NCBI GenBank assembly: GCA_047495785.1
Contig: JBLDXI010000002.1
Coordinates: 1,426,001 to 1,490,000 of the forward strand
Source of the DNA: Lepidodermella squamata
Taxonomy: Eukaryota; Animalia; Gastrotricha
Length of the DNA: 64,000 bases
Direction of reading: 5' to 3'
The first letter of the stretch is position 1. Each line of letters opens with the position of its first letter. Of the stretch, positions 13,980 to 61,200 are shown one piece after another. A program made the translations under genes and the position numbers. The notes under the pieces are model-generated. The model was not told where the DNA came from. It worked only from the letters and a program-made list of their open reading frames with translations, and did not search any database.

Positions 13980-16031
13980 TCAACTGCGTTTCAGACCAAA
14001 CTTTTCCGGCTGCAGGAATTCGTCGATTATCGCGTGTACGACGCTGCTCAACAACTTCTCAACCTCGCCGGCTTTTTGTCCCGGCTTTCCGGGCAACTCC
14101 GTGTAGTATTTAATCTTCGGCTCAGTTCCGCTAGTGCGCAGCGTCGCCGACGTCCCATTCGCAAATGTAAACGTAATCATCTGAGTTGACGAACTAACAG
14201 GCAATAGCGGCGTTTTGTTCGGCATAAAACTATCGTAGCCGATCGTTAAATCACGAACTCCAACAATTTCATAAGAACCGCATTTTTCAGGGTAGCTCGG
14301 CTCCGGATTCGGCGACTTGTCCCCCTTAAAATTCCTCAAGCGGTCGAAAACCGCGCGAATCGTGTCCGGGTCGTAGCAGAGAAAATACGAGTTGATGCTA
14401 TGGTGATAGCCGTATTTCTCGAAAAGAGACTCCAGCATCCCAGATAACGACCCGTATTTAGCGTAGGCGTATGTAATCATCTGCCCGCCGACGGCTAAGG
14501 CAGAAATACCGTCCTTATCCAAGACCTTACTGCCACACATGAAACCGATGGCCTCTTCAAACGCGAAAATAATCGTGTTATCTTTCGACTGTTTCATCAA
14601 CTCATCGGCGCGGTTTCCCATCCACTTGAACCCGGTCAGCGTTTCCTCCACCTTAAAACCTTCAACCTTGCCAATCGACTGCAGCATTTTCGATGAAACA
14701 GTCGAGTGAAGCATGTAAGCATTTGCTGGGTTGAAGTTGGGATTGCGGGTTTTGAAGGTAAACCAGCACCAATAGCCGAGAAGCGTGCCCAGCTGGTTGC
14801 CGGTGAAGATACGCCACTTCCCAGTATCGGCTTGCTTTTCGGCAACAGCGAAACGATCGGCATCGGGATCGTTCGCGACAACTATAGTTGCACCATGTTC
14901 ATCCGCGGTTTTAAACGATAGTTGCTATACAAAATTTGAGTTAAAAGTGTTTAGATCAGAAAATTCAGAATTATTACCAGGGTATCAGGGCCCTCTTCCG
15001 GATTCGGATATTTGACGGTCGGAAAATCGCCGTCCGGTTGGGCCTGCTCTGGAACCGCGATGAAAGGCGGCAATCCGAACGCTTTGAATGAGGCCTCAGC
15101 GTAGGGCAAACCGACTCCGTGAACAGGGGTGTAAACGAATTTCGGAGCTTTATCAGCTGGCAATCCATTCATCAGTCTAATTAATAAAAAAATCATACAA
15201 TTTCGAGTTGGAATGTTGAAAAACGTACTCTCCAGCATTCAAACATTGCATATCTTCGTAGTAGGTCCTCATAACTTCGGGCAAGGGGTCGTGCAACAGC
15301 GGGGAATCATCCAGCTGCGACAAATCCCATGACCCTTCCCATGGCTCGAGATTTTGTTCAATTGCATCCGCAATTCCACGATCAACCGGCGACTTGATCT
15401 GAGCACCATTCGACCAATAGACCTTATAACCGTTGTCCCACTTTGGATTGTGAGAAGCTAAGAAACAATAGTAATTATAAAATTATACATAAATTATGAG
15501 AAATTAATTACCGGTCACCATGATGCCACAAACACAGCCCTTCTTCAGCAACGTATATGGCTGAAAAATCAACAATTTTATCGATTTTTTAATTCAAATT
15601 TAATTTTGTTCACTCACAACAAACGGCGTCGGGTTGACTCGCGTAAATAAGTAAACAGGAATGTTTTGGCGAATCAAAATGTTAGCAACAATGCGAGCCC
15701 ATTTGGCACTGTTGTGTCGGCCGTCGAATCCGACAACAACGCCCTTTGATGTCGCCTCCGGGTGGCATTTTAGCAGATGCTTGACGAGCCCTTGCGTTGT
15801 TTGGATGATCACCAAGTCGTTCATGTAGCCGAAGCCGGCTTTCATTGCCCCGCGAAGACCAGCAGTGCCGAACTCCATGCGGCAACAAAGGCGATGGTGT
15901 AATTCTTCGAGATTTTTAGCTCGCGACAACTCTTCGATTTCCTCCTTTGTAGCGGTGTTTTGGTCCCATTTTTGCCATTGGGAGACAGACGACGAGCACT
16001 CGCTACCTCCTGCAGCGTGTTTTTTCGACAT
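13980..16031 (-). CDS. PGM2: Phosphoglucomutase-2 / phosphopentomutase (5 exons)
   Basis: RMEFGTAGLRG, GFDGRHNS, spliced GIMVT|ASHNP, YTPVHGVG, PNPEEG, ANDPDADR, TLTGFKWMGN, FAFEEAIG, RTSGTEPKIKYY. Confidence 0.96.
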
Positions 16032-16311: not shown

Positions 16312-17637
16312 TCAACTTTGCGCCAGGAAAGCATCGAAGTAAGAGTTTATTGCCTCCATATTGCAGACAATGTCTTGTTCCAGGGTCTCAGATTTTGATG
16401 TTTGCACTTGTTTGATTTGAGATTTAATCGCATCTTTCATTTCACGCTTTTGACTATCGCTCAACAACGAACAGTTAGCCACCAACACAGATACATGGCC
16501 AAGAAAATGAGCAAAAGTTGCTTGTAAATTCGGAGTTTTTGTTCCGGTGGGAATAAAAATTCTAGCAACTTCTGCGTCAGCGGAGTTGATAGAAGCTGAC
16601 TTCTGGTAAGCCGTGATTTCTAGCATTATTTGCTTGCGAGCCCCCACAGTGAGAAAGGGTAGTTGACGTAAATCTTCTTCCGTAGATCGCATTAAGACTT
16701 CGTAGGTAATTTGACCAGATGCAAAATCTTTCCCGTAGTGTTCCAAGTTCAACTTCGTTAACAATTTGGCCAACTCGGCATCAACAATGTTTGCTAGACC
16801 GTTAGATGGTGTTGGCTTTTGGCCGGCCGCCGAATTAGGAGAAGCAGGAACATGTAACTGAGGTGGAGGTCTCATAGTTTTTGATTGTGCACGGTGAAGC
16901 AAATTAACAACTTGAGCGTGACCACGAAACGAAGCAACATCGATGGGCAGAGCGCCATCGCGAGTCTTCAAAGTAATATCAGCTCCATGTCTCAACAGAA
17001 TTCGAACGATATCGTCATGACCACACTCTGCAGCTAGTATTAATGGTGTAGCGAGCCTACTTTTCTCCGCTATATTAGGATCTGCCCCATTTTTCAACAG
17101 CAACTCTGCGGTAGAAGGATGACCGTAATTTATGGCGTAAAATAGTGCTGTCCAGCCGCGGCTGTCAACAGAGTTTGCACGGCAATCTGGTAACGCTAAC
17201 AAAGCAGATACGCATTCATCATGGCCATTCGCCGCTGCAAGCATAAGAGCTGTCTGCTGTCGACCAGAATTATTTGGTGCAGCTTTTTCAGCATAAAAAG
17301 AGCACGAAACTCGACGACGCCCTAAATATTGGACGGTTGAAGTGTGTCCAAGGCAGGCAGCATACATTAGAGGGGTCCATGCTGACCGGTTCGGCGAGTC
17401 CAAGTCTCCCGCAGTAAACCTTGTCAAATGCTCGATATGACCCAGGCTGGCAGCTGTAAAATAATATGATTTGTTATGAAACAAACGAATAAGCTGCAAA
17501 ACAAATCACTTACCAGTGCAAGCATCTAGCGGAACAAACTCGACTTCATCATGGGCCAGCAACTCAGAGAAGAATTTATCTTCTTCCTGCTGAGGGTTCA
17601 AAATCGGCGTTACTTTTGGTGAAACTGAAGTCGCCAT
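16312..17637 (-). CDS. ANKS3: Ankyrin repeat and SAM domain protein, copy 1 (exons 17637-17514 and 17453-16312)
   Basis: Spliced VPLDACT|AASLG, WTPLMYAA, QTALMLAA, GWTALFYA, TPLILAA ankyrin repeats followed by a SAM domain (LNLEHY..TEEDLRQL..VGARKQI); order and motifs match ANKS3. Confidence 0.85.
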
Positions 17638-40013: not shown

Positions 40014-40198
40014 TGATGTAAAAATACCGCTTTATTTAAAGAAAAAAGGTGACATTTGTTTCGGTTATTTCATGCCTTTGCTGTGTCTTGACTTCAACTA
40101 AAAAATCTATTCGCAATTCCGCTATTTTGCGTAGTAATTTAATGAAAAAACTGAGGGTTGGAATTTTTCAATTTTTTCTAGACATTTTATTGATTAAA

Positions 40199-41137
<939 letters not shown>

Positions 41138-43340: not shown

Positions 43341-45758
43341 AGTAAGTTATTGAAAATTTAGAAATTTATTTTTGAACTTTTCATTTCTAGTGGTGGTCCA
43401 TGTTCGAATACCGACCTCGTCGAAGATCGTTGATGCAAATGGAACATCCACCGTGTATCACATATACCTCAATGGCACGTTTCACTGCTCGGCGCGGTAT
43501 AGCCGGCTAGCCGAACTCGATTCGCTGCTGCGAAAAAATATCAACTCTTCGCCATCTTCGTCGCTTCGCAGTGCGAAATCAACGTTCAATGGCTCGCACT
43601 GCACGTCGAACATGTTGTTTGTACCACCCCACATAGCCGCCGCCTTCCCTCAGTTCCCGCCTCGAAAATTTCCGTTGCTGCAAATGAGCGATAGTGAAAT
43701 TGACGAAAGACGGCGGCAGCTTGAGGCCTACCTTCAATTTGTATGCAGTGTTGACGAAATTGTTAGTTCTACGCTGTTTTCTCGGTATTTGATCTCGCTT
43801 CAGTTGGAGACGCATCAAATCGCCGCGGAATCGGTGGATATCGAAATTAATTTCGTCAACGATAGCCGCCTTAAAATTAGCACGACAACCGACTGCTCGC
43901 CTCTCGACGTTATGATCCGCGTTTGCTCAGAAATTCACCTGCCGCTTGAATTAGCGTCGTATTTCGGATTATTCGTCGTATTAGACGGCACTCTTTCGCG
44001 ACGGCTACTCGATTGCGAGTCGACGTACGTCGCTAGCAGTAATCGCCAGTCGAAGTTGATATTTCGCCGCGATTACTACCACGCTAAACTCGACGAAATT
44101 TTAGTCAGCGATCAAACCGCGGTAAATTTGCTATTCATCGAGGCGGTGATTTCGTGGCGAAACGGCATTGCCGAGCCGTCGGAAACGCAAACTCGTGAGT
44201 TGGAAAGTTTGAAACAGGCCAATTTACGGGCGGATTTTCTTCACACAATTCGATCTGTACCGCATTACGGCGCGGCGTTGTTTCGCGATTGTAAGATGTC
44301 GTTTAAGAAAAATCAGCTGGAAAAGTGTTCCGTCCGGGTTGGCAACGGGTTCGTCGCAGTTTCAGCCCTTGCGAATTCTTCAACGCCGACTTATGTTTTC
44401 GAATTGAAGCGAATTTCGTGTTGGCAGGTGCGTTACGCTTCGTTGGATTCGCTTGGTAACCAGCAAAATGGCAACCATCATCATCATCAAAATGGGAACG
44501 GCGTGACGTCGAATGGGAATTCGAATGGCCATCACCATCATAGGGCGTATCAAAATGGCAATGGTCACGCGCCAGCGATTCAAGAAATGGATGAGCTGGC
44601 CTTTCAATACCGTGATTCATCTTCAGCTGCTGATTGGGTCAAAATTAACAGCTATCAGGTTAGTAATTGTTGCCGCATTTTCGTTATTAATCAAATTATT
44701 ATATCAACCCATGATTTGATGGAATTTTTTTCGAGTGATCACTTGAAAATACTTCGAGTAGCAGCTGATTATGCATTAAGAGCATATTTTTTCACTTTTT
44801 TCGAATTATTAAGAAAAATGGGGTTTCATTCAAGATCGATTGAGAATATTACAACTGATATCAACTGCCAAAATTCTAATCATTGAAAATTCTTGAAATT
44901 ACCTGAATTGTTTTGAATCTTGAAGATTTCGAATTACTCTGCTGGCTTGATATACTGAGCCTATTTTTGAGCTAAAAATTCCGAAAGGATCTGACTCTGA
45001 TAGTTTTTTCAATTTGAAAATTCTCGATGAATTTCTGCTTCCGATTTGGCCAAGTGCATTAAGGATGCAGTTCCCTCGTTATGCCTTGAAAACATTCGAA
45101 TTTTTCTATCGAGAACTGACATTTCTGGTCTTTGGTATTCTAATTTTCGTTATTGTCCCATTTTATTTTCGAAATTAAGATCAGAAAATTTTTAGCCTTT
45201 TTAAAGATTTTTATAGAAAATCAATTCGAATTTTTTGTATCTGATATCTTCTCCCCCGCAACTAAATTTTAAATATTAATAATACTGTAAATTATACGAA
45301 CAAAAATTACCATTTTTCAGGCATCGTTGATTGGTCACTGTCTCGGTCGCTTGATGGAAGACTGTGTCCGTCTACGGTCGTTGTATGCATCGAACGGCTC
45401 ATCCTACTCGCTATCGATATCGAACGGCAGCTCGAACGGGGACCATCACCACCCGGCGCCGATCACGAGTCGATCGAACAGCGCCTCGAGCTCAAATTCA
45501 TCAACCTTCATGCCGGCGAATGGCTTCGACACGTCGACGTCATCATTCGCAGCGTTGAAAAACGGCATCAACAACGACGGCAATCACGTTGTTTCTTCAC
45601 TGTCGAACTCACTCAATTTATCACGAGGGTCAGCAACGAACGGCTCGTCGAGCTACCCGTCTATTCGACTATCAACCGTTGCAGCCGCGTTGATCGGCAA
45701 TGCATCGGATAAAAACTCGCCATTGGCGCATGACACAATAGGCGATGATGACCTGTAA
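43341..45758 (+). CDS. SNX17: Sorting nexin 17-like PX-FERM protein (A at 43341; exons 43391-44658 and 45321-45758)
   Basis: VYHIYLNGTFHCSARYS.L PX start, FPPRK, ERRRQLEAYLQ, AVNLLFIEA, RISCWQV, C-terminal IGDDDL matching the SNX17 IGDEDL tail. Confidence 0.88.
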
Positions 45759-47109
45759 CGTAGGATATTAACTATGGGTTTTTTGTTTTGAATTTTTCGC
45801 ATGCCAATTCATCGAGGCCAATCGATCACTTTTCTCTGTTTTACTGCGCTGAGTTTCACTTTCTCGCTGACATAATCTGACGATGCATGGCTATTTCTTA
45901 TAATATCTCTAAAGTGTGAGTCTCTATTCAATACTATTCATTTTTGTGAATCTAATGTTTTCGCAAAGGGTACTAACTATTCAAAAAAGTTAAGGTGGAT
46001 TTTGTACGTGTTGTAGACTTGCTTTCCCTGTATTCTAGCCGCAAGCCTCGGTTTGTGTTTTGCCTTTCTTAATCACTTTCACTAAAACTCCGACGGGAAA
46101 TTGAAAAAACCGTCGTTAAGTCTGATGCGCTTTGAATGTTTTACTGTCGAAACCACGTGAATGATCTCGATCGGAAGAAAAAACCTGATTTTTTTGTTTT
46201 TCTTTGTTCATCCGTTTAGTTCTACTAAATTTTTCCTGTTAAAAAATTAATTTTTATGAGCAATATATTGATTATTATTATTGGGCACTTGAAATTAACT
46301 AAAAATCACTCACACCTGTGCGCGTGTTTTACTACAATAAAATATCACTTGAATACCAATTTGGATTAATCATGCTCGATATTGAAAATATTTAAACTTT
46401 GTTGTCTGGATTGCTATATAATACAGATCTTCAGATCCCGTTCGATCGTAAAAGTCTCACCGATGAACGAAAAAGTCTTATTATTATGACGATGATAATC
46501 AACAATCTTGAAAGAATCAGTCGTGAAAAAATAATAAAAAAGCTTTTTGGAAAATGTTCTAATTTTTCTCTCGATATTTCTATATAGGGCAGGGCGAAAA
46601 GCTTAGCGCTTATACGATGCGTGACCGGTTGCTGATTTACACCTGGCTAGACTCACGCCACGGAATTATTTATGCGAAGAATTGCTGGATATCATATATT
46701 AGGGCGCTGATTTCTCGATCTCCTTAGAGCTGTTCTTGACACGGTTTCCGATACCCAGGAGTAATAACGATTATTCTAGTGCAGCTTTTGTTGTTCAATC
46801 CGAAGAGAGCCGATGGATTCGCAATGTTTCGAAGATAAGATGTTCGGTTCAAGATAGCGTCGAGATAAGGTTGCGTGCAAAATTTGTTCACCCGAAATTG
46901 CGTGTCTCCTTTTATTGCCGTTATTATTATTTAGGCGGATCCGCCCATCTGCCATTCGATTTTTATTATTCATGACTACTAGCCGTCTAGGTAGACGAGA
47001 TGAATTAGCTATACACATGTTCGAATATTTGTACGCAGTGATAATGATCCTAATCATTAAATCTGCCGAGATCGTAAAATTTTTGATCGAGATTTATTGG
47101 TATATAGCT

Positions 47110-50100
47110 ATGGCCTACAATAAATCGAGAGCAGATAACCTCTCGCAGCTAAACAAAGCCGCGTTTCGCTGGTGATGGGGGCGAACTGTTCGATCGATGT
47201 TTTGTTTTCTGACCTATTACCGCTTTCATTTGTTATTAGAGTGCTGCGATTATTATTGCTCCCAACACTCGTGAAGTGCGCGCAGTCAGTATACAATTTT
47301 TGCGCGCATTGTTTTGCGCACGGCTGCAGATGACCTGTCCGATATGCGCGTAGTAAACACCTGCAGCCCAACCCATGACTTCGCAATATCTGGAGTAGTG
47401 TATAAGTAGTCAATGAAAAGAAAAGTTTTCCGCCCGCTGTCTCGGAAGAACTCAACCACCGTATATTTGCGCGGAAAAAATAACGCGCAACACTTGTTAG
47501 CCTCACTAAATTATATAATAATGCACCCTATATGCGCCACTTGATGTTACGCGAGTTGAATGGCCCGAATTCGAGCTAAATCAGGTTATACTGGATTTTT
47601 CACGTCGCATTTTTATTCGATTATTTGTTTATTTCTGCCTTCCTTCCGCCGCTAAAATTTAGGTCATTATTTACAAGATAATTTCTCATAATTCGATGAT
47701 AATTGTTCGACCTACTTGAGGTAAATAGCCGCGTGCTACATGCTCGCAATCTGTGTCGTGTTTGGTCGTTTATTAAATTGTAAAACAACGTAAATACAAA
47801 GTCTTGTTGTTGTTCTACCTCTACAATGGACGTACAGCGATTGATGCAGCGACGAATGGCTATATCGGCCAACCCGGCTGATTGTCTGCCCGGCTCGCAG
47901 GCCAAAACATCAATGCTAGAGTAAATTAATCATTTCAATAATTTGTTTTTATTATGACATTTTTGTTATTTATTCTAAACACAAATTATTGTGGCTTTCC
48001 TATGTCGATTTTTCGAGCATTATTTTGACTCGTCGTCGTCTCTCACTATAAATTATGCCGCCATGCTAAAAACAACAACATTACACGTGCTATAATGATT
48101 TTAAAATTCCGATGATTTTACTTTGCGGTAATTTTTGTTCGCAGTTTTAATTGCTGTTATTCACAAGATACTGCCTTGTCCCAAGAACACAATAATGTCT
48201 TTCGTAAAATTTCCTACCACATTTGAGTTTCTTTTTATTTTGGTGCGTAATTCCATACTCTCGCCGTGCAATTCTCGAAGGATTCGTCATTTATTTATGA
48301 AAACATGGAGTTTTCGGCTTAGAGATGTGTGGGAAATTAGAGCGTCGCCGCGGGGTGTCTACATGAGACATTCGATATCTGGCGGGGCAAGAAGCTGAAT
48401 TCATGTTTTAGATGAAAATCCTGGGAAAAAATGGAGAATTTTAGTCTTATTTGAAATATCGCTATTGCACCTCGATGGTAACCATCGACGACAGCCATGC
48501 TGACACATCGCCGCCGAAGGAAGTCGGCCGATTTTCGATCCACCACCATGAAGGCCATGGATCAACTAAGTACTGAACCGATAAGCTATATTATTATATT
48601 ATTTTCGCAAAAAATGGAAAAAATTTGATTTTTAGGGGTAAAACAGAAATAATTTGCTGTTGTTTACTATTTATTGGATCAAGTCCTTCTCATGATTACC
48701 GAGTGACATTTATAGCAGGGTCATTTGTTTCTCGTTATTTTTATTTATTCGCGTCGCCTAATCTGTTAGGAATATTTTGAATCAATTGAGTAAACATATT
48801 GGGCCTTCGCCGAGGCCATAATCAAAATTATTAGCCAGTGCCATTTTTACTGATCCTTAGATTGATGGATGAGTTAAAATTGCCTTCAATTCAGATTTAT
48901 TCGGGTGATTCATCATTTTTACCCTTATATTATTCGTTAAATTTCGTCGTAGCTTTTACCTCTAATTCAAAATAAACGATTCGGCGTATATCGCTAATCT
49001 TGAGATGTATATTCCTTCTGGGTAGAGCTCTGGTCAATGTTGAGCGAATTTTTCTCCAGTTTAAAAATTTTTCCGTTTCAAGTGCATTTCTGACGATTTT
49101 CTGAGGCAATCCAACTCGGACACGCTTATCGATATTTTCGCGTAATATCGAATTGCGTCAACTTGGTAGTCGGGAGTTGTCGATATTCGTCATTCGAAAT
49201 CCGCAAAAGTAGTATCAGAAGGAATTAAAAATCTCGGCGTGGTAAACATGAGACTATAAAATCGCCTGCTAAATTTTTTCTGATTACTCAATTTTGGAAG
49301 GGCTTATGGCAAATCCGAAAGCTAACGATTTCCCTATATGTTTTTGTTTGAAATCAGTGTATAATTTAGAGTAACTCTGATTGTTGGGCTTTTTCTGTGG
49401 TCATAAATTATTTCTGATGAGTATCGGAATGTTAACCAAATTTTCTTCTCTATACGAGAATGACGATCAAGAGGCGTCAAAGTATGTTCTATTATTATCG
49501 TTTTATTTCTATTAAAGCATTATTAGGACACCATTATCTCTTCCGGGGTGGCTCGGCTATACAAAGCACAGAGTAGTCAGAAGCCCCGTGCTCAATGTTA
49601 GCGTGCTGGCTTTTTAAATTATTCAAATCCCATCGGACGTAGCGATAAACGATTTTACAATCATTGTCTCACGGCCAGAAAATGTAGCAGTAGCCGCGCC
49701 TCATGTTGTGGCGACTTGAACGATCGCACTCATCGTGTGTATAATATTGTTATTGGGCTATTGGCAAATATAATAATTCGGGAAAAATCGGCCTGAAAAA
49801 ACTCATCAGCGCCGTTAATTTTTTAACCGCAACAAATTTGTTGTACGTTTTTTACACGGCGATAATTTCGATATAACATTTCAACCCCAGTCGTATCTAC
49901 TCGACATTGCGCAAGTTGAATCGCTCGCCAGAACCCCAACAATACATGTAAGTACTATATATTTGTTATAAATTCAATGAACACCAAACCAAAAAAAAAC
50001 GTGAATTTATTTTTTCACTCAATTATACCACGGGTGCCCACAATTTTTATTGCATTGTACCGATCTTCAAATTGATCACTTGAATTTTGTGAACTATTTT

Positions 50101-51992
50101 TCTCACACTCTGATCAATGGCAAGACGTCCGAGTTTGATCACATTCGCGTTGCAAAGCAATCCTCAGCCGACGGACTCATCGCTCGCTGAGATGAATGAG
50201 CGTCGGCGGTTCTCGAAACCGGGCGGCGGCGGTAAAAGGCAGATATACTCCATTAAAGAACCAACGACGACGTTAGCCGACTCAAATTCCAATTCGGTAT
50301 CTATGCTGCCACTGATTGTGGCGCCGAAATTGGACGGCCGACACGTTGACATGATGATGAACATGTTAGATGATGTCAACGTATTTGCGGCACGTCGTTC
50401 AGCTGCATTCGCTAGTGATTCGAGAGCCTCCCGCCCTCAGTTAGTTACATACGAAAAAATTAGTTTCTTTAATAAAAAAATTCGACCCTCTAGAGGTTCC
50501 CCATCAGCGGTGTCATGTGCGATTTTTTTGAAGTTTTTCCGAATTTTTTTAAAATTAGCCTAGATATTTATTTTAAATCAGGTTAATTTCTGAAAATTTC
50601 TAGAAAAATTCCTCCTTAAATTTTAATTCTCATTGTTAAATTGTAGAATTATAGATTAATTATACGTATTAAGTCGCCGGTTTGTAGTCCCAAACCACTA
50701 CCTCGTGTCGGTAATTATTACAACTTTTGCCTATATTAATTATAGGCTGCCTTGTCTTATCATCGCGCGCGCGCTCTCTCTTATTGTGTTGCGGCGACGC
50801 GTATATTTGAGGGCCGAAAAATCTTTGATTTTTATGGCGTGATTTGCTGCGCGTGTCACGCAAAGGCGCGGTTGCGGGCGGAAATGACTTGTTGTAAGTC
50901 TCGAGACATGAAAATAATACGAAATGGCGACTAATTATGATACGCATTATGATACGCCGACAAAAAGTCGTCGACGACGACTTCCGACCTTATTGGCTGC
51001 TGCTGCTGCTGGCATTCGTTGCGTTTTATTGCCGCCGCTGTTGCCGAGTATCGATGGCGATTGTTTGAGCTATAAGGTGTAGTAAATAAATTATGTTATA
51101 CACGCCATCAGACATCAGGTACGATAAAGTTGTCGACCGCACTGCTGCGCCTTGCATTCATCAGCATCAAGCAGCGACAACGCAAAATTCAGTAGTAGGA
51201 GCCAATAATAACGCCAACAATCTCGGGTGAGTACCTTTCCGCTCTCGTGGCCCATTCGCGAATAAAAATATGTTTTCGTGCTGCTCGTTCTATAGTAGTG
51301 GTAATATTAATAATAATAATATCGTCGCGTGTTTGTAAAATTTACAAACATTAATGTGTATCGAATCGCAGAAGTCATAAAAACCCTTGTTATGTAATAT
51401 CGGCACATATTATTACCATACACATCGGCGACGACTCAAGAAATCATCCTCGTTTTACGCGCTTTCTAACGAGCACGCATTAAAATTGAATATATATCGC
51501 AACAAGCAGTGGTCGAGGCCAAAACGGCGTAAGTCAAGCGACCAGTTTTTTTTTATGAATATATCAATAAATCATCATCATCACACGCTATATATCGCTA
51601 TCACTCTTTGACTTCTTCTTGTTTTATCACTGCCGTTTTAAGGCGACTTTGAAATCGCTATGGATGAGTTAACACGCCGGCTTGCTGCAAATTTCCCGCA
51701 ACCTAATAATCATAACAATAATCTAAAACAGTTAGTTACGCTTTATTACATCTCTATAATATTATTGGTATCGTTGTATCTTCGCTACATATTCTTATTG
51801 CCGCGATTTTTGAAACAAAAAAATGAATTTTGTGAGATCACGTGATAGAAAGCGTAAATCTTTTTTCTTACCGGCCGAGTTTAAACGCTCGACCCGTGGC
51901 GTTCCGAACAGCAGTCAAGCGGCGCCGCTCCTTGGAGGCGGCCTCAAGAACGCTGGCATGGGTGACCTCAATGACCAGCCGGTTAACAACGA
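47110..51992 (+). CDS. Array of candidate alternative first coding exons of the IP3R-like gene
   Basis: ATG-initiated mini-frames ending in phase-2 GT donors at 47110-47171, 47826-47920, 48475-48569, 49417-49481, 50117-50439, 51093-51226, 51660-51730, 51823-51992, plus AT|gtaagt at 49946-49947; all join in frame to the acceptor at 52257/52258. Confidence 0.65.
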
Positions 51993-52257
51993 GTTAGTAC
52001 CGCCATCGAAGCATTGTAGCATTGCTGTTTTCTAGCGCGTGGCGTTTGTGTTTTTTCGATTTTAGACAGTTGTTTTTTTGCAAAATTTGACTGTGTCAAC
52101 TCACTTGTTGTTGCCTTTTAAACAATCTTGGTGTGCGTGCTTTTTTGAGGAGTTTTGTCTATGATAGATATACACTTTGCCTTTAGCTGTTTGTTTTGTG
52201 TTTTTGATGCCGAAATTTTGAGCGAAAATTAAATGATCTTTTTTTATCTTTCAACAG

Positions 52258-55200
52258 GCCGACGGTTGGGTCTGGCCGAGATCGCGATGGTAGCGATTTC
52301 CTATGTATCGGCGATGTGATTGCTCTTTATTGCGAAGAAACGGGCGGTTACATCTTCAGCTTTCAATCCAGGTAAAAAAATGAAGGCTTCAATAATTTTA
52401 CCGAATTTTTTTTATATTTTAGCTCCGCCTACAACGGCTTGTACATTTATTATGGACAAGATCGCAAAAAACCGCAAAATATTCAGGACCCAAAGGGAAT
52501 TACATTTCAAGTTTGCATACAAAATCGCTACAAGCTGAACAAGCAACTTCGAAAATTGCAAGATGCAATACGAGACGACCCTAATAACTTGGAATTACGG
52601 GCTTTGCTACCTCAAGCTGAAGTAAAATTGTTTTAAATATTTTTTCTAAATTTAATTGAATTTTTTAAGGCGGCTTCCAATGCTGAGCATTCGGACAACG
52701 TGGCTGAACAGCGGCGCCTGCAGGGTAAAAAAGTGCGGTACGGCGATACGGTTCAGTTGCGTCACATGTACACGCACAAATTTGTACATGTCTCGACGAC
52801 GTCGACGTCAACTCGCGATAAGAACAACATGAAAATTGAACTGCAGTTGTACAACGCTAAACATGCGCAATTTCGCATTCAGCCGCGTTACAAAGTCAAG
52901 TCCGAGGGCGAATACGTTCAAGTCTACGACCAAGTCGTTTTCGAGAGCGTCAAATCGCCTGGTCATTACTTTCACGCTAGTTTTCCCTATTTCATCACCG
53001 ATATTCTATATGGGTAAGTTTCTAATATTAAGGTGAAAAATGTATAAATCCCTCATTTTTCAGAGCTGAACTGAATTCCAGTGTCGAAGTGACCGGATTC
53101 AGCGTTGCCAAATATCACCGACCTCAAACTAGAGATGAAACTCTTGTTAAGGTGAATCATTGAAAATTTTCGCGATTTATATGACTAATTTGTCCTTATT
53201 TCAGTCTGGCTCAGTTTTCATGCTATTCCATAAAGAAATGGAGGCTTATTTGACCGCTGAGGGTTTACTTGATTACAATATCACTGAAGGGGGTGAGTTT
53301 TTTTAATGAAAATTTTTGAAAAAAATTGATTATTTCTCGTTTTTACAGTTCACTTGAAGCTAATCGCTGTGGATAATTTCAGCGAAAAAGCTATCCTAGG
53401 CCCGCAAAATGTGTCGTATTGCTGGCAAATCGAACCCGAGGAGAGTATTATTCGCGGCGGTCCGATTCGTTGGGATCAGCAGATTCGCCTACGACACGTC
53501 ACTACATCTCACTACTTATGCATCGATAACGATTTGAAAGTTTCACTGTCACGTGACGCGGATCCTAGCACTGTTTTCCAGCTGCACTCTGTGTTGAAAG
53601 AAAGCGGCGAAATTGCGTTTGAAAGCTATGCGCGTATTCAACACGTACTCACCGGCTACTGGCTGCATGCGACCAAGGACGAGATGCATATTGTACAGTA
53701 CCAGGGCGGCCCAAATGAAGACCGATCTTTCCTCTACATCGATCGTGATACTTCGAAATTGAGGAAGATCCTAGCGACGGAAGATAGCCAGTATCAAAAC
53801 GCATTCACCATACGAGTTGTAGACGAATCGCTAATAACGGGAGCTAATTTTGTCCTCGGCATGGCTCCTTTCCTCATGCGACTCATTAAAAATGTTTGAA
53901 TTTTCAAAAAAATTTGGATTTTTTATTTAATTTTTTTTATTTTAGCGAAAAGATGGAAAGTCGATGAAAATGTACAACACTCACAAAGTTGTCAGCGTAA
54001 GTTATTTTCTTGATTGAATTTTTTTTTACGAATAATGAAAAATCGGCATTTTAAGCCAGATTAATAAATTCTTTTTTTCCGCTTTTTTTGGAAAATTGAA
54101 ATTGAAATAAATTTTTGTAAATTTTACAGGCGCTGCGCGAACTTCGCGACTTCATGGTTCATAACGGAGAATCGGTCAAGGTACGCCAGCGGATGCTGAG
54201 CAGCGCTAAAATCGTCGATTTGCTCGTCGAATTGCTGGCATGCCCCGTCGATGGCGTGCCGGACGAAGCTAATCTAACGCCGATTTTTCTCGGGGCTTAC
54301 GATGTCATCCATCAGTACATGCGTGGCTGCAAGAAGAACTGCCTGTATTTCGCGAAGAACATCACATTTCTGCAGCAACAACTGACGTTGAAGCCTGAAA
54401 TTTCGCTGAGCGTTGTCAGGCTTGTTGTTGAGTTGATTCGTGACAATCGCAAGGTCGTCGATCGAATATCATCGGACCAAATCGACTGGTTTGTCGGGTT
54501 GTTGCGGAAGACGAAAAACTACCGATTTCTCGAGTTGCTAAACGTACTCTGCGTATGTGACGGCGTCGGAATTCCTGCGAATCAAAACTGTATTGTTCAA
54601 AAATGGCTGAACAAGGACAAGGAGGACGTGTATTTGATCCAGCGCGGCCAATTTATCAGCTTGGAAAGTAATCTCAACTACGTCAGTGTTAACGGCGGCC
54701 GGTCTTGGACGTCACTGCACACGTTTTTGAACCCGATCAGCCCTGATTATTCCGAGAGCAAATGCCAATTTTTGCACGCTCAGTTGGATTTATTCGCCAA
54801 TCTGTGCTATGGCCATAACAGTTTTGCGATGAGGCAAATCACGCATGAATATGAAATTCTCACCTGGGACCAGGCGATGTTTTGCCTTCGAAGTGAGATT
54901 TTACCAGCCGATTTACGCGCGAAATATTGCCGTTTAATCACCGATCTTTTCGTTGATATGGGCAATAATTATTCGGTCCTAGATCACGTGGTGACTTCGT
55001 TCAATTACGAGGAAATTGAGGTGAATCTCGCGTCGGCTAAGCGGCATTTCAAATACGCCGAGCAGGAACTTCACACCGTTACTCCGATTTTGAAGGAATG
55101 GATTTCGGATTTTGTCAAGAAAAATCCAATCATGTATACGAACGAAGTTGGCCAGAACAAGCTGATCGAGGAGGTTATGAAGTTGCTGCAGTGTTTGATT

Positions 55201-58200: not shown

Positions 58201-61200
58201 ATACGGTCGAAACTCAACTTGGTTATAAAGGAAACTTAAGACGTGAGTTGATTTTCCACTTCAAAATAATGTTAATTAACACTTTTTTATAGCATACACC
58301 TCGCTATCGGACGACGAAGCGCTACCACTTGGGCGTGAATTTCAAGCCCTAGTCCGATGTTTTGTAAAAACAGGCGAGAAAGAGAATAACAAACGCTTCG
58401 TCCAAGCCGAAAAATTGGTCAATTTTCTGCGAATTCTCGCGCATTACAGCAATTTATCAAGCACCCTATCCGGCGCCCTTGCCGGACTGCCGCCTTGCAT
58501 TGAGCTGGAACAGCTCTGTATGCGATGCCTACAGCTGTTGCGGGCGATTATTCACAATGAAGAGCGTCGATTGCCGGCCAATTGGGGCCAGTTGCTCGCC
58601 GATCGGCAGACAATCAAGCAGTTGCGCGTGTTGAAAGAAGTTCAAGATACTTTGAACGCCTACGGGGCGATGAAGCAGGTGATACCGCTGTGCGGTCAGC
58701 GATCTCGCGCCCTTGTCCAGGAAGCGTTGCTGCTCATCAGCATGATGCTGTTCAACGCGAACCGGAATGCTCAAAAGGCGATTCTAGACTTCTTCTTGCA
58801 CACGCGGCTCGAGACGTTTTTCGCGACAATTCGCACGCGTATGCAAATGTCGACGGTTGCGATTAAGGAGAGCCGGGCTTTGCTCATGTTTCACAAATCA
58901 AAAACTGCCGAGTTTTCAATTGTGCCTGAAATCGCGCCGGAGACGAGCGGGAACAACGGGAATCTGATACCATCAGGCACGAGTGGCATCATGAAGCGAG
59001 GAACTATGGCGGCGATTGAGCCACCACCGCAGTTTTCAGACCTCGATCGGCCGCATGGCGATTCGATGCGGCATGCGCTGGTGCCGAAGAGTGGCAAGCG
59101 GGCGAGGCTGGAAAGTCAGGGCAAATGCGGGTCTTGCTGCATTCCGAGGGGAGCGGATGAAAAGCGAAGACCATCGACGACTGCCTACAACGGCGAGATG
59201 GACGAAATGCTTGGATACAAGGGCGATACATCAGTTGTACCGGTAAATTTTCGCCGAACCTAAGAATTTATTTTGAAAATCGATTAATTGAAAGGCTGCT
59301 AGGAAATATACCACGAAAACGAAATTTTTATAATTTTAAAAAAAATCCTCCTTAATTTTTTTGAAATTTTTTAATTTGTCTACAATTTTTCCTAACTAAA
59401 GTTCAGCGGTTTCGGGTATGATTGCAAAATATTGCGTCACTTCAAGGTCAATAATAGTTTTTTGCTTGCGTGTTTTTACAATTTCATTTTTTCTAATTTT
59501 TTCAATTTTTTTCGCGATTTTTGTAATATTTCAAATTTAACTGATTTTTTTAAATATTTCCAGCTGACTCACTCAAAGGCTGACATGAAAGACGCGACCA
59601 CAGTTGTTCAAAGCCGAGAAGGTGGTGACATAGAGCAGGGCGAGGGTCGGTCTAAAGGCCACGGTCACGGCGGCCGGTCGCTGCCCGCCTACGAGTACAA
59701 AGACGACGGCTGTATCAACCTAGTCCTTCGCGTGCTCGCCGCAATGTGCGACGGTCAGATGAACAAAATGCAAAATTACCTGCGCGAACAGCCGGATAAC
59801 ATCAAATCAGTCAACATCATCGCAGATACAGCGAGATTCCTCGAGGTGATCTACTCCAACATCAGCGCGTCGACCATCGACCTAGCTATTCAAGTTTTCA
59901 TGACGTTGAACACGTTCACCGTAGCGAATCAATCGAATCGAATGGTTATGATTGACAACAAAGTGATTGATTACATCAATTTCATCCTTCGAGCTGGAAA
60001 ATTGCGAGATTGCGCCGCGAATAAACAACTGGAAATTCGCCGTGAAATCGGAAATCTCCTCCTTTCGATGATCGAAGAAAACGGCCCTCTCGAGCTGCTA
60101 GTCGGCCGTGAAGTTCTGGAAACCCTGGATAAAGATGCGATTTACAAATGCATGGTCGAGTGTTGTAACATCTATCGAGCGTTATCGCTCAAAGGCCTGC
60201 GGGTTCGGAAAGCTAGGCGTGAATTGATCGATCGACTTCGCCAGTCGAAAAATTGCTTGAAAGATTTGTTGAGTGACCCGAAGGCGATGCATGACCGCGA
60301 TTTGGCGGCGAAATTGTTCGATACAGGCTTTTTGTACTTCCAAATCCTGCAACGGTTGTACGATATTGAACCTGGCTGGGAGGAGCGGCAGGAAATTGTG
60401 ATCAACAGCGAGCAGCGGGATGTTTACGACTTTTTCAAGAAAAATTCAATGTCTGTCGAAGTGGTGAAGGGCGAGAGTCTGCAGAAGATAAACTTCCTTG
60501 TTCGCAATAAGGACGCAATTCGGGAGGAGGTGAAGGAAAAACTGAAATGGAGCGTCGATCGATCGAGCCCGCGTAATAAGGTTCAGGACTTGGTTATGTG
60601 GTCGAAGGACATTCTACGGGATGCGCATTATCAGAAGAAAATTTTGAGTAAGCCGATCGCGATGATGTTTACGCGATTTTGGCTGTTCTGGAATCAGCTC
60701 TCCATTTTGCTATCGCTGCTGATTAATTTCATCATGATTTACACGTGGCATTCGGTTGTCCAGCCGGATGAAGTTAGCTTCCATAATGAAGAGAAAAACT
60801 CAACGGAGGAAGAAGACGATTTCGACATTGATTCATTCGTCGCAGGATTGTGAGTTAAAAATTTTAAACAAAAATTAATTTTAATATCGAATTTTTACCA
60901 GGTATAAACCGCCTGATAGAAGAACGTTGCTGAACCGGGAGTATCCACCGTTTGGCTATGTGAATAACCTGGACCCAGATATACGCGGCCTTTCAAAGCG
61001 GACCTACAACATGTCGATGTACCTGCTCGGCGGGCTTCACAACGCGTCCGCTGTTTTTGTGTTCATCGCCTACTTCCTCAGCAATCATCCTACGCTGCCC
61101 AAATTTAGAGGGTTCGTTTTTTTCAATCATGACCTATTTAATAATTATTTTTGCATTAATAGTGTGGTAACCTGGTTTCAAAAGCTGTGTCGGCGCAAAG

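Follow-up and report, generated by a model that had tools for sequence, protein, structure and literature searches.

Where does translation of the inositol trisphosphate (IP3) receptor gene of the gastrotrich Lepidodermella squamata begin? The gene lies on the + strand of a 64,000-nucleotide (nt) stretch of contig JBLDXI010000002.1 (assembly GCA_047495785.1, positions 1,426,001 to 1,490,000), called the window here and numbered from its first base, and the first constant exon of the gene, at 52258, carries no start codon. An original prediction, made from the letters of the window, had proposed that up to nine alternative first exons between 47110 and 51992 feed this exon, each giving the same IP3R-like channel a different N-terminus. 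The reading favored here, with fair confidence, is an IP3R with an obligatory leader that is supplied by at least two leader exons, and most likely by four or five, which exclude one another and lie within 2.3 kb. That at least two alternative leader exons exist is likely; a number of four or five is put forward tentatively, and it is very doubtful that all nine are real.

The constant exon and its missing start

The exon on which the argument turns is the following:

52258-52371, + strand: first constant IP3R exon, starting on the third base of a codon and encoding the start of the suppressor domain (..GSDFLCIGD..)

In frame +1 this exon reads PTVGSGRDRDGSDFLCIGD..., holds no ATG and requires a phase-2 donor upstream; the acceptor before it is good (ttttttatctttcaacag). 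The next two exons likewise contain no in-frame ATG, and a reading of the exon translations places the first in-frame methionine of the constant part about 135 residues in. Followed 5' of the acceptor, the frame reaches a stop without passing an ATG, and this is the case both in the window and in a related species represented by sequence from ENA metagenome contigs L001 to L003 (the relative in what follows). The identification as an IP3R-like channel, already made in the original prediction, is borne out by a search of one window exon against the PDB, which matched structures of IP3R1-3 (E=6e-12), and by the exons of the relative, which carry Ins145_P3_rec, MIR, RYDR_ITPR and RIH_assoc domains (PF08709, PF02815, PF01365, PF08454); on these matches, the + strand from 52258 on is read as encoding an IP3 receptor.

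The N-terminus of an annelid homologue is M-SDFLCFGD, compared with G-SDFLCIGD in the window protein. Judged by this alignment, the ancestral initiator methionine is replaced by glycine and the ancestral start is lost; an intron sits 12 codons upstream of that glycine. Because the constant exon lacks an ATG, its frame is closed upstream and the ancestral start is lost, the gene cannot do without an upstream exon that has an ATG and a phase-2 donor, and on this point the original prediction holds in the window and in the relative alike. The nearest gene 5' of the receptor is SNX17-like; its end is at 45758, an AATAAA lies near 46337, and about 5.9 kb is then left before the receptor.

Candidate leader exons and the test against chance

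The original prediction listed eight ATG-started mini-frames and one AT/GTAAGT site in this interval, and all of its coordinates were correct. Each of the eight frames starts with ATG, runs without a stop and ends in two extra bases before a GT, and in no case does the junction codon completed by G52258 become a stop. Counted from the 5' side, the last four frames and the AT/GTAAGT site are as follows:

51823-51992, + strand: proximal putative leader exon (eighth frame), ATG-started, 56 codons plus GA, donor GTTAGT
51660-51730, + strand: putative leader exon (seventh frame), ATG-started, 23 codons plus CA, donor GTTAGTTAC
51093-51226, + strand: putative leader exon (sixth frame), ATG-started, 44 codons plus GG, donor GTGAGT, TAG acceptor 10 nt before the ATG
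50117-50439, + strand: longest putative leader exon (fifth frame), ATG-started, 107 codons plus CA, donor GTTAGTTAC
49704-49947, + strand: candidate non-coding first exon ending in AT before GTAAGT; AT joined to G52258 would give ATG (M-P-T-V-G-S..)

Strong donors were defined as GT[AGT]AGT, and 2000 dinucleotide shuffles, the other phases and the minus strand served as controls. The + strand of 45800-52257 has eight strong donors, where the shuffles give 3.2 (P=0.018) and the minus strand has four. Half of these eight (50440, 51227, 51731 and 51993) close ATG-open phase-2 frames, of 107, 44, 23 and 56 codons, respectively. Phase-2 frames of at least 20 codons at strong donors therefore number four, against a shuffle mean of 0.28 (P about 0.0005), and three frames of at least 40 codons at strong donors occurred in 0 of the 2000 shuffles. 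The corresponding ATG-open frames number zero in phase 0, one in phase 1 and zero on the minus strand, and the summed open codons at strong donors reach 239 against 14.7 expected.

The excess does not extend to weaker donors. At medium donors there are 10 distinct frames in phase 2; the other two phases have 2 and 5, and shuffles 3.3. Four of these 10 are the strong exons, and the six that are left without them are not a significant excess over the 3.3 expected. When any GT is accepted as a donor, frames of at least 18 codons are distributed 15/19/22 among phases 0/1/2, so that none of the four distal candidates stands out from the background:

49417-49481, + strand: distal candidate (fourth frame), 21 codons, donor GTATGT, no GC island; probably chance
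48475-48569, + strand: distal candidate (third frame), 31 codons, poor donor GTACTG; unproven
47826-47920, + strand: distal candidate (second frame), 31 codons, donor GTAAAT, on a sharp GC island; unproven
47110-47171, + strand: distal candidate (first frame), poor donor GTGATG, earlier in-frame ATGs back to 46972; probably chance

These four are a pick from about 22 equivalent phase-2 frames and are inseparable from chance. Only the four proximal candidates, 50117-50439, 51093-51226, 51660-51730 and 51823-51992, exceed it; more than one upstream ATG exon with a compatible donor is thus found beyond chance at the four strong donors, and none among the distal four. The proposed count of up to nine consequently divides into four solid exons, one plausible AT/GTAAGT site and four frames that resemble chance, and the phase and shuffle comparison that had been suggested gave a phase-2 excess at strong donors and none with any GT. 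The reservation originally attached to 47110 and 48475, that their donors are weaker and that some candidates may be chance, was well placed: both donors are poor and both frames are at background. The hexamer GTAAAT, the donor of the 47826 candidate, also occurs at a probable IP3R donor at 59243. Codon usage was tried as a discriminator and rejected: each of the eight candidates has its highest score in its own frame, but the same is true of half of the null frames.

Anatomy of the putative proximal leader exons

The proximal exon at 51823 is preceded by 99 nt that are AG-free and A-rich, and a TATA-like element, TATAAT, stands some 65 nt 5' of the ATG. In front of the 50117 exon, AG is likewise missing from 170 nt (49953-50122) that reach into its first codons, and a TATA-like motif lies upstream. 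These AG-free stretches and TATA-like motifs would fit putative transcription starts of their own for 50117 and 51823. Before the 51660 exon there is a strong pyrimidine tract and an AG ending at 51642, 17 nt before the ATG; this exon could instead be an upstream open reading frame (ORF) of the proximal transcript. Two further donors lie in the same region:

50894-50899, + strand: GTAAGT donor without a usable ORF, putative role; may close a non-coding exon spliced to the TAG acceptor of the 51093 exon
51529-51534, + strand: GTAAGT donor without an ORF, putative role; may end a non-coding exon that joins the acceptor at 51642

The 107-codon leader at 50117 has no Pfam domain, and searches of 5.8 billion clusters and 1.84 billion representatives gave it no homologue; its two weak matches were repeat proteins and were rejected as homologues. 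The 5.9-kb interval as a whole matched no Rfam family, transfer RNA (tRNA) or repeat, and its other ORFs had no Pfam match.

The site at 49947 is a perfect donor with 240 ATG-free nt upstream, and it is plausible as a further leader donor. A start codon assembled by splicing has a precedent in the neighboring SNX17-like gene (43341-43392, + strand), where an exon ending in ..CATTTCAA (..TTCAA at 43341) is followed by GTAAGT, a 49-nt intron and then TG GTG GTC at 43391. The start codon thus appears split A/TG, the only join that would yield the conserved N-terminus MVVHVRIPTSS; the first exon has no other ATG, and the gene has a Pfam PX match. This peptide presumably aligns with the start of human SNX17.

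Additional observations concern the same elements. The donors at 50435-50448 and 51726-51739 have the 11-mer CAGTTAGTTAC in common. A 21-nt motif including the exact 10-mer CGTATATTTG (TATA-like) is common to 47460-47480 and 50800-50820; both sites are in GC-rich islands, about 300-370 nt upstream of the candidate ATGs at 47826 and 51093. In a YIPF-like gene (40182-40201, + strand), an acceptor (ttttttctag) lies 17 nt before the ATG, the same signature as the AG before the ATGs of 51093 and 51660.

Layout of the candidate leader exons in the relative

Compared one by one, the exons of the window and the relative are 80-95% identical, and identity reaches 92-94% over the constant N-terminal 218 residues. 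A difference is seen at 61% of four-fold degenerate sites (Jukes-Cantor distance 1.27), so that neutral sites are saturated, and between the upstream regions blastn and tblastn found nothing. The acceptor of the relative, at L001:1151, is ATG-less, in the same phase and with the same first base G (ttttcag/G ACT GTT.., TVGSGRDRDASDFLCIGD), and the 1150 nt upstream of it contain three ATG-open phase-2 frames:

L001:739-935: proximal frame of the relative, 65 codons, donor CC/GTTAGC, counterpart of 51823-51992
L001:594-655: second frame, 20 codons, donor GA/GTTCGT, counterpart of 51660-51730, with tgtatag 14 nt before the ATG
L001:344-381: third frame, 12 codons, donor GA/GTAAGA

The two proximal exons correspond in size, spacing and immediate surroundings:

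Proximal exon size: relative 197 nt, window 170 nt
Second exon size: relative 62 nt, window 71 nt
Gap between the two proximal exons: relative 83 nt, window 92 nt
Sequence before the proximal ATG: AG-free and A-rich in relative and window alike
AG acceptor before the second ATG: relative 14 nt upstream, window 17 nt upstream

The layout is therefore kept in the relative, with two to three phase-2 ATG frames, two of which match those of the window in size and spacing. Because four-fold sites differ at 61%, an open frame of 56-65 codons in both species is not inherited noise.

The proximal leaders of the two species have F-x-R-S-R near the N-terminus as their sole common stretch. The basophilic-kinase consensus [RK][RK]x[ST] occurs beyond composition in both, twice in the window leader (P=0.01) and three times in that of the relative (P=0.003), and is also enriched in the long leader at 50117-50439 (P=0.045); the motif was chosen after it had been seen, and these values are a lead and not a test. 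Overall, of the conservation that was to be looked for in a related species, the acceptor phase and the two-exon layout are kept and the leader peptides are not.

Longer upstream sequence of the relative was sought by exact look-ups of neighboring ORFs, which gave the same contigs, and by two scans of JGI metagenomes, which gave nothing. The locus of the relative occurs in the ENA metagenomes ERZ23486764, ERZ27333047 and ERZ27332993. Among transcript-derived proteins, queries with the intron-less N-terminal exon of the relative and with a MIR exon returned only the relative itself and two distant animals.

The gene structures of the two species also differ. The relative is without the first two introns of the window (L001:1151-1805 versus 52258-53014) and carries an intron of its own at about L001:3674-3743, a position uninterrupted in the window, so that intron turnover has taken place between species with 80-95% identical proteins.

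The GTTAGT donors

As originally noted, the GTTAGT donors upstream of the receptor are three in number and all in phase 2: exactly three GTTAGT occur on the + strand of 46000-52257, all of them at donors of the original prediction. The whole window has 12 on the + strand and 4 on the minus strand, and the hexamer stands at three probable short introns elsewhere (21729, 44659 and 63267), as identified by a crude search for short introns that was too noisy for a clean donor table. A T at position +3 is seen in the leader donors of both species, as GTTAGT three times in the window and as GTTAGC and GTTCGT in the relative (L001:934-941).

Sequencing runs and strand signals upstream

Run X2, the DNA source, contains two haplotypes at about half depth each, with clustered single-nucleotide polymorphisms and insertions or deletions. 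The haplotypes differ at 49140-49223, 50521-50626, 50748-50801, 52330-52415 and 52600-52658, and nowhere in the candidate leader exons; the four differences within constant exons all fall, by our own count, at third codon positions.

On the + strand of 46351-50116, T exceeds A (skew -0.084, z=-4.1), and the receptor's own introns have a skew of -0.059. The + strand of 45800-52400 is additionally AG-poor, with 264 AG versus 342 on the other strand and 16 AG-free runs of at least 70 nt versus 6. Both signals resemble the sense strand of an intron, a hint that transcription of the receptor could start several kb upstream.

Proposed explanation

In the explanation favored here, translation would have to start in one of the leader exons farther 5', which is then joined in phase 2 to the acceptor at 52258. 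The leaders would be 51823-51992, 51660-51730, 51093-51226, 50117-50439 and perhaps the non-coding exon ending in AT at 49947, with the proposed donors in use, and each would add to the same channel an N-terminal extension of its own, 0 to 108 residues long and probably disordered. The 50117 and 51823 exons would have their own promoters, consistent with the AG-free sequence and the TATA-like motif upstream of each, and the 51093 and 51660 exons, with an AG 10 and 17 nt before the ATG, would have either a spliced leader or a short non-coding exon joined to them. The arrangement would mainly serve a choice of promoter or tissue, as in itr-1 of Caenorhabditis elegans, and not peptide-specific gating. 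A gating role for the peptides is disfavored because, apart from the basic-x-Ser/Thr motifs of the proximal leaders, they are not conserved; the original suggestion that the N-termini tune gating fares poorly for the same reason, the leader peptides being unalignable while the constant N-terminus is 92-94% identical.

Several results weigh against this explanation. The statistical significance hinges on accepting T at donor position +3, and 0 of the 11 IP3R donors placed with fair confidence have it (all are GTA or GTG); at the window's putative short introns, GTTAGT accounts for no more than a minority of the donors. The codon-usage scores of the candidates fall between null and coding, and phase 2 is no different in this respect from phases 0 and 1. 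ATG-free runs like the one before 49947 are common on both strands, and that run is not significant. The leader peptides of window and relative gave no significant Smith-Waterman score against shuffles and cannot be aligned, and the contigs of the relative end 1150 nt before the acceptor, so that the comparison covers the two proximal exons and not 50117 or 51093. Finally, the two sequencing runs were uninformative on splicing: X2 is DNA, and X1, a thin 2015 library with mates stored end to end, yielded DNA-like contigs and no spliced joint. The X1 fragments lie at 47.7-48.4, 49.1, 49.6, 51.0-51.2 and 52.3-52.5 kb, and some read through the proposed donor at 47921; they are given no weight here.

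Alternative explanations

The strongest competitor is a single real leader, 51823-51992, with the other frames being upstream ORFs, regulatory DNA or chance. Strictly, one ATG exon is all that is needed, and the proximal exon has the best comparative support. Its neighbor 92 nt upstream, 51660-51730, would if unspliced be an upstream ORF overlapping the ATG at 51823, and the counterpart of this neighbor in the relative has a weaker donor (GTTCGT). This explanation is nevertheless unlikely, as four long phase-2 frames at strong donors arise in about 1 of 2000 shuffles, and never in the other phases or on the other strand, and a 107-codon frame closing at GTTAGTTAC is not readily produced by chance.

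At the opposite extreme, the original prediction can be taken in full, as an array running from 47110 to 51992, in which eight or nine promoters, each with its first exon, give cell-type-specific N-termini. The T skew of 46351-50116 and the AG depletion, as hints of a far-upstream start, would suit such an array, as would the position of 47826 and 48475 on sharp GC islands with the best codon scores and the phase-2 majority at medium donors. Against this stand the lack of a significant excess at medium donors once the four strong exons are set aside, the phase counts of 15, 19 and 22 with any GT, the poor donors of three of the four distal frames (GTGATG, GTACTG and GTATGT) and the lack of paralogy among the exons, and the sequence of the relative does not reach the distal part; the full array is accordingly given very little credence. 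Hardly more probable is its most elaborate form, in which the 5.9-kb region is a bank of at least eight promoters and leaders, the split AT/G included, that forms a cell-type code of N-terminal extensions for the animal's single IP3 receptor, with unusual GTTAG donors marking regulated exons and phosphorylatable basic-x-Ser motifs giving some of the leaders a regulatory role.

It is also very improbable that the message is trans-spliced directly at 52258, taking its start from a spliced leader ending in AU or from a non-AUG codon and leaving the upstream frames irrelevant. In its favor, the acceptor at 52258 is strong and the first base is G in both species, but other genes have their own ATG after the acceptor, and the excess of phase-2 frames at strong donors would be left unexplained. 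A last alternative is that the 50117 frame, which runs for 148 codons before it stops, belongs to a small gene of its own or to a non-coding transcript and has nothing to do with the receptor, as may also hold for some of the other frames. This could be argued from a 5.9-kb interval in a compact genome and from the X1 fragments at 47.7-48.4 kb that read through 47921, but is scarcely credible given that no Pfam, Rfam, tRNA or homologue match was found, that the translation past 50439 looks like AT-rich junk and that an AATAAA lies within the extended frame.

Other observations in the window

A segment of about 2.6 kb is seemingly present twice at about 15.5-20.6 kb, with identical putative introns at 15643 and 18235 (+ strand) and at 17513 and 20105 (minus strand).

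Comparison with known systems

The leader exons favored here recall the protocadherin and UGT1A loci, to which the original prediction had likened them, in that many first exons are spliced to the same constant exons. The variable exons of those loci, however, are large tandem paralogues that encode whole domains, whereas the exons described here are short, unrelated and domain-free, with peptides that are not conserved. A search for paralogy among the candidate exons found no direct repeats and no pairwise similarity; because the exons are not paralogous, this is not an array of the protocadherin or UGT1A type, and that analogy does not hold. Plectin also has N-terminal variants that derive from alternative first exons. 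Short variable N-termini are placed on a constant protein by alternative first exons in DPP6 and KChIP (PMC3366920, PMC3973911), where the variant peptides are conserved and shown to alter channel behavior; in the present gene the peptides are not conserved and their roles are putative.

The closest system is itr-1 of C. elegans, a gene of the same family in which alternative 5' exons feed a common body. It reportedly has three promoters, pA, pB and pC, that give three alternative N-termini. Through its several promoters the gene makes IP3R isoforms specific to particular cells (Gower et al. 2001, J Mol Biol 306:145, as cited in PMC1564418 and PMC2729924), and its pC promoter is described as lying in introns of the gene (PMC1564418). 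The present gene differs from itr-1 in having four or five candidate leaders within 2.3 kb instead of three, in the unrelated sequences of the leaders and in being read from sequence alone. The alternative-leader layout is therefore of a known type, with no new mechanism, and the original statement that the array is larger than known for this channel family holds only marginally, since itr-1 has the multiple promoters pA to pC. If RNA confirms the layout, this would be a second animal IP3R, after itr-1, with expression split among promoters and N-terminal leaders, and its phylum is one for which molecular data hardly exist. In annotation, a gene finder seeking an ATG in the first conserved exon would miss the true start of such a gene, and the start itself may arise by splicing.

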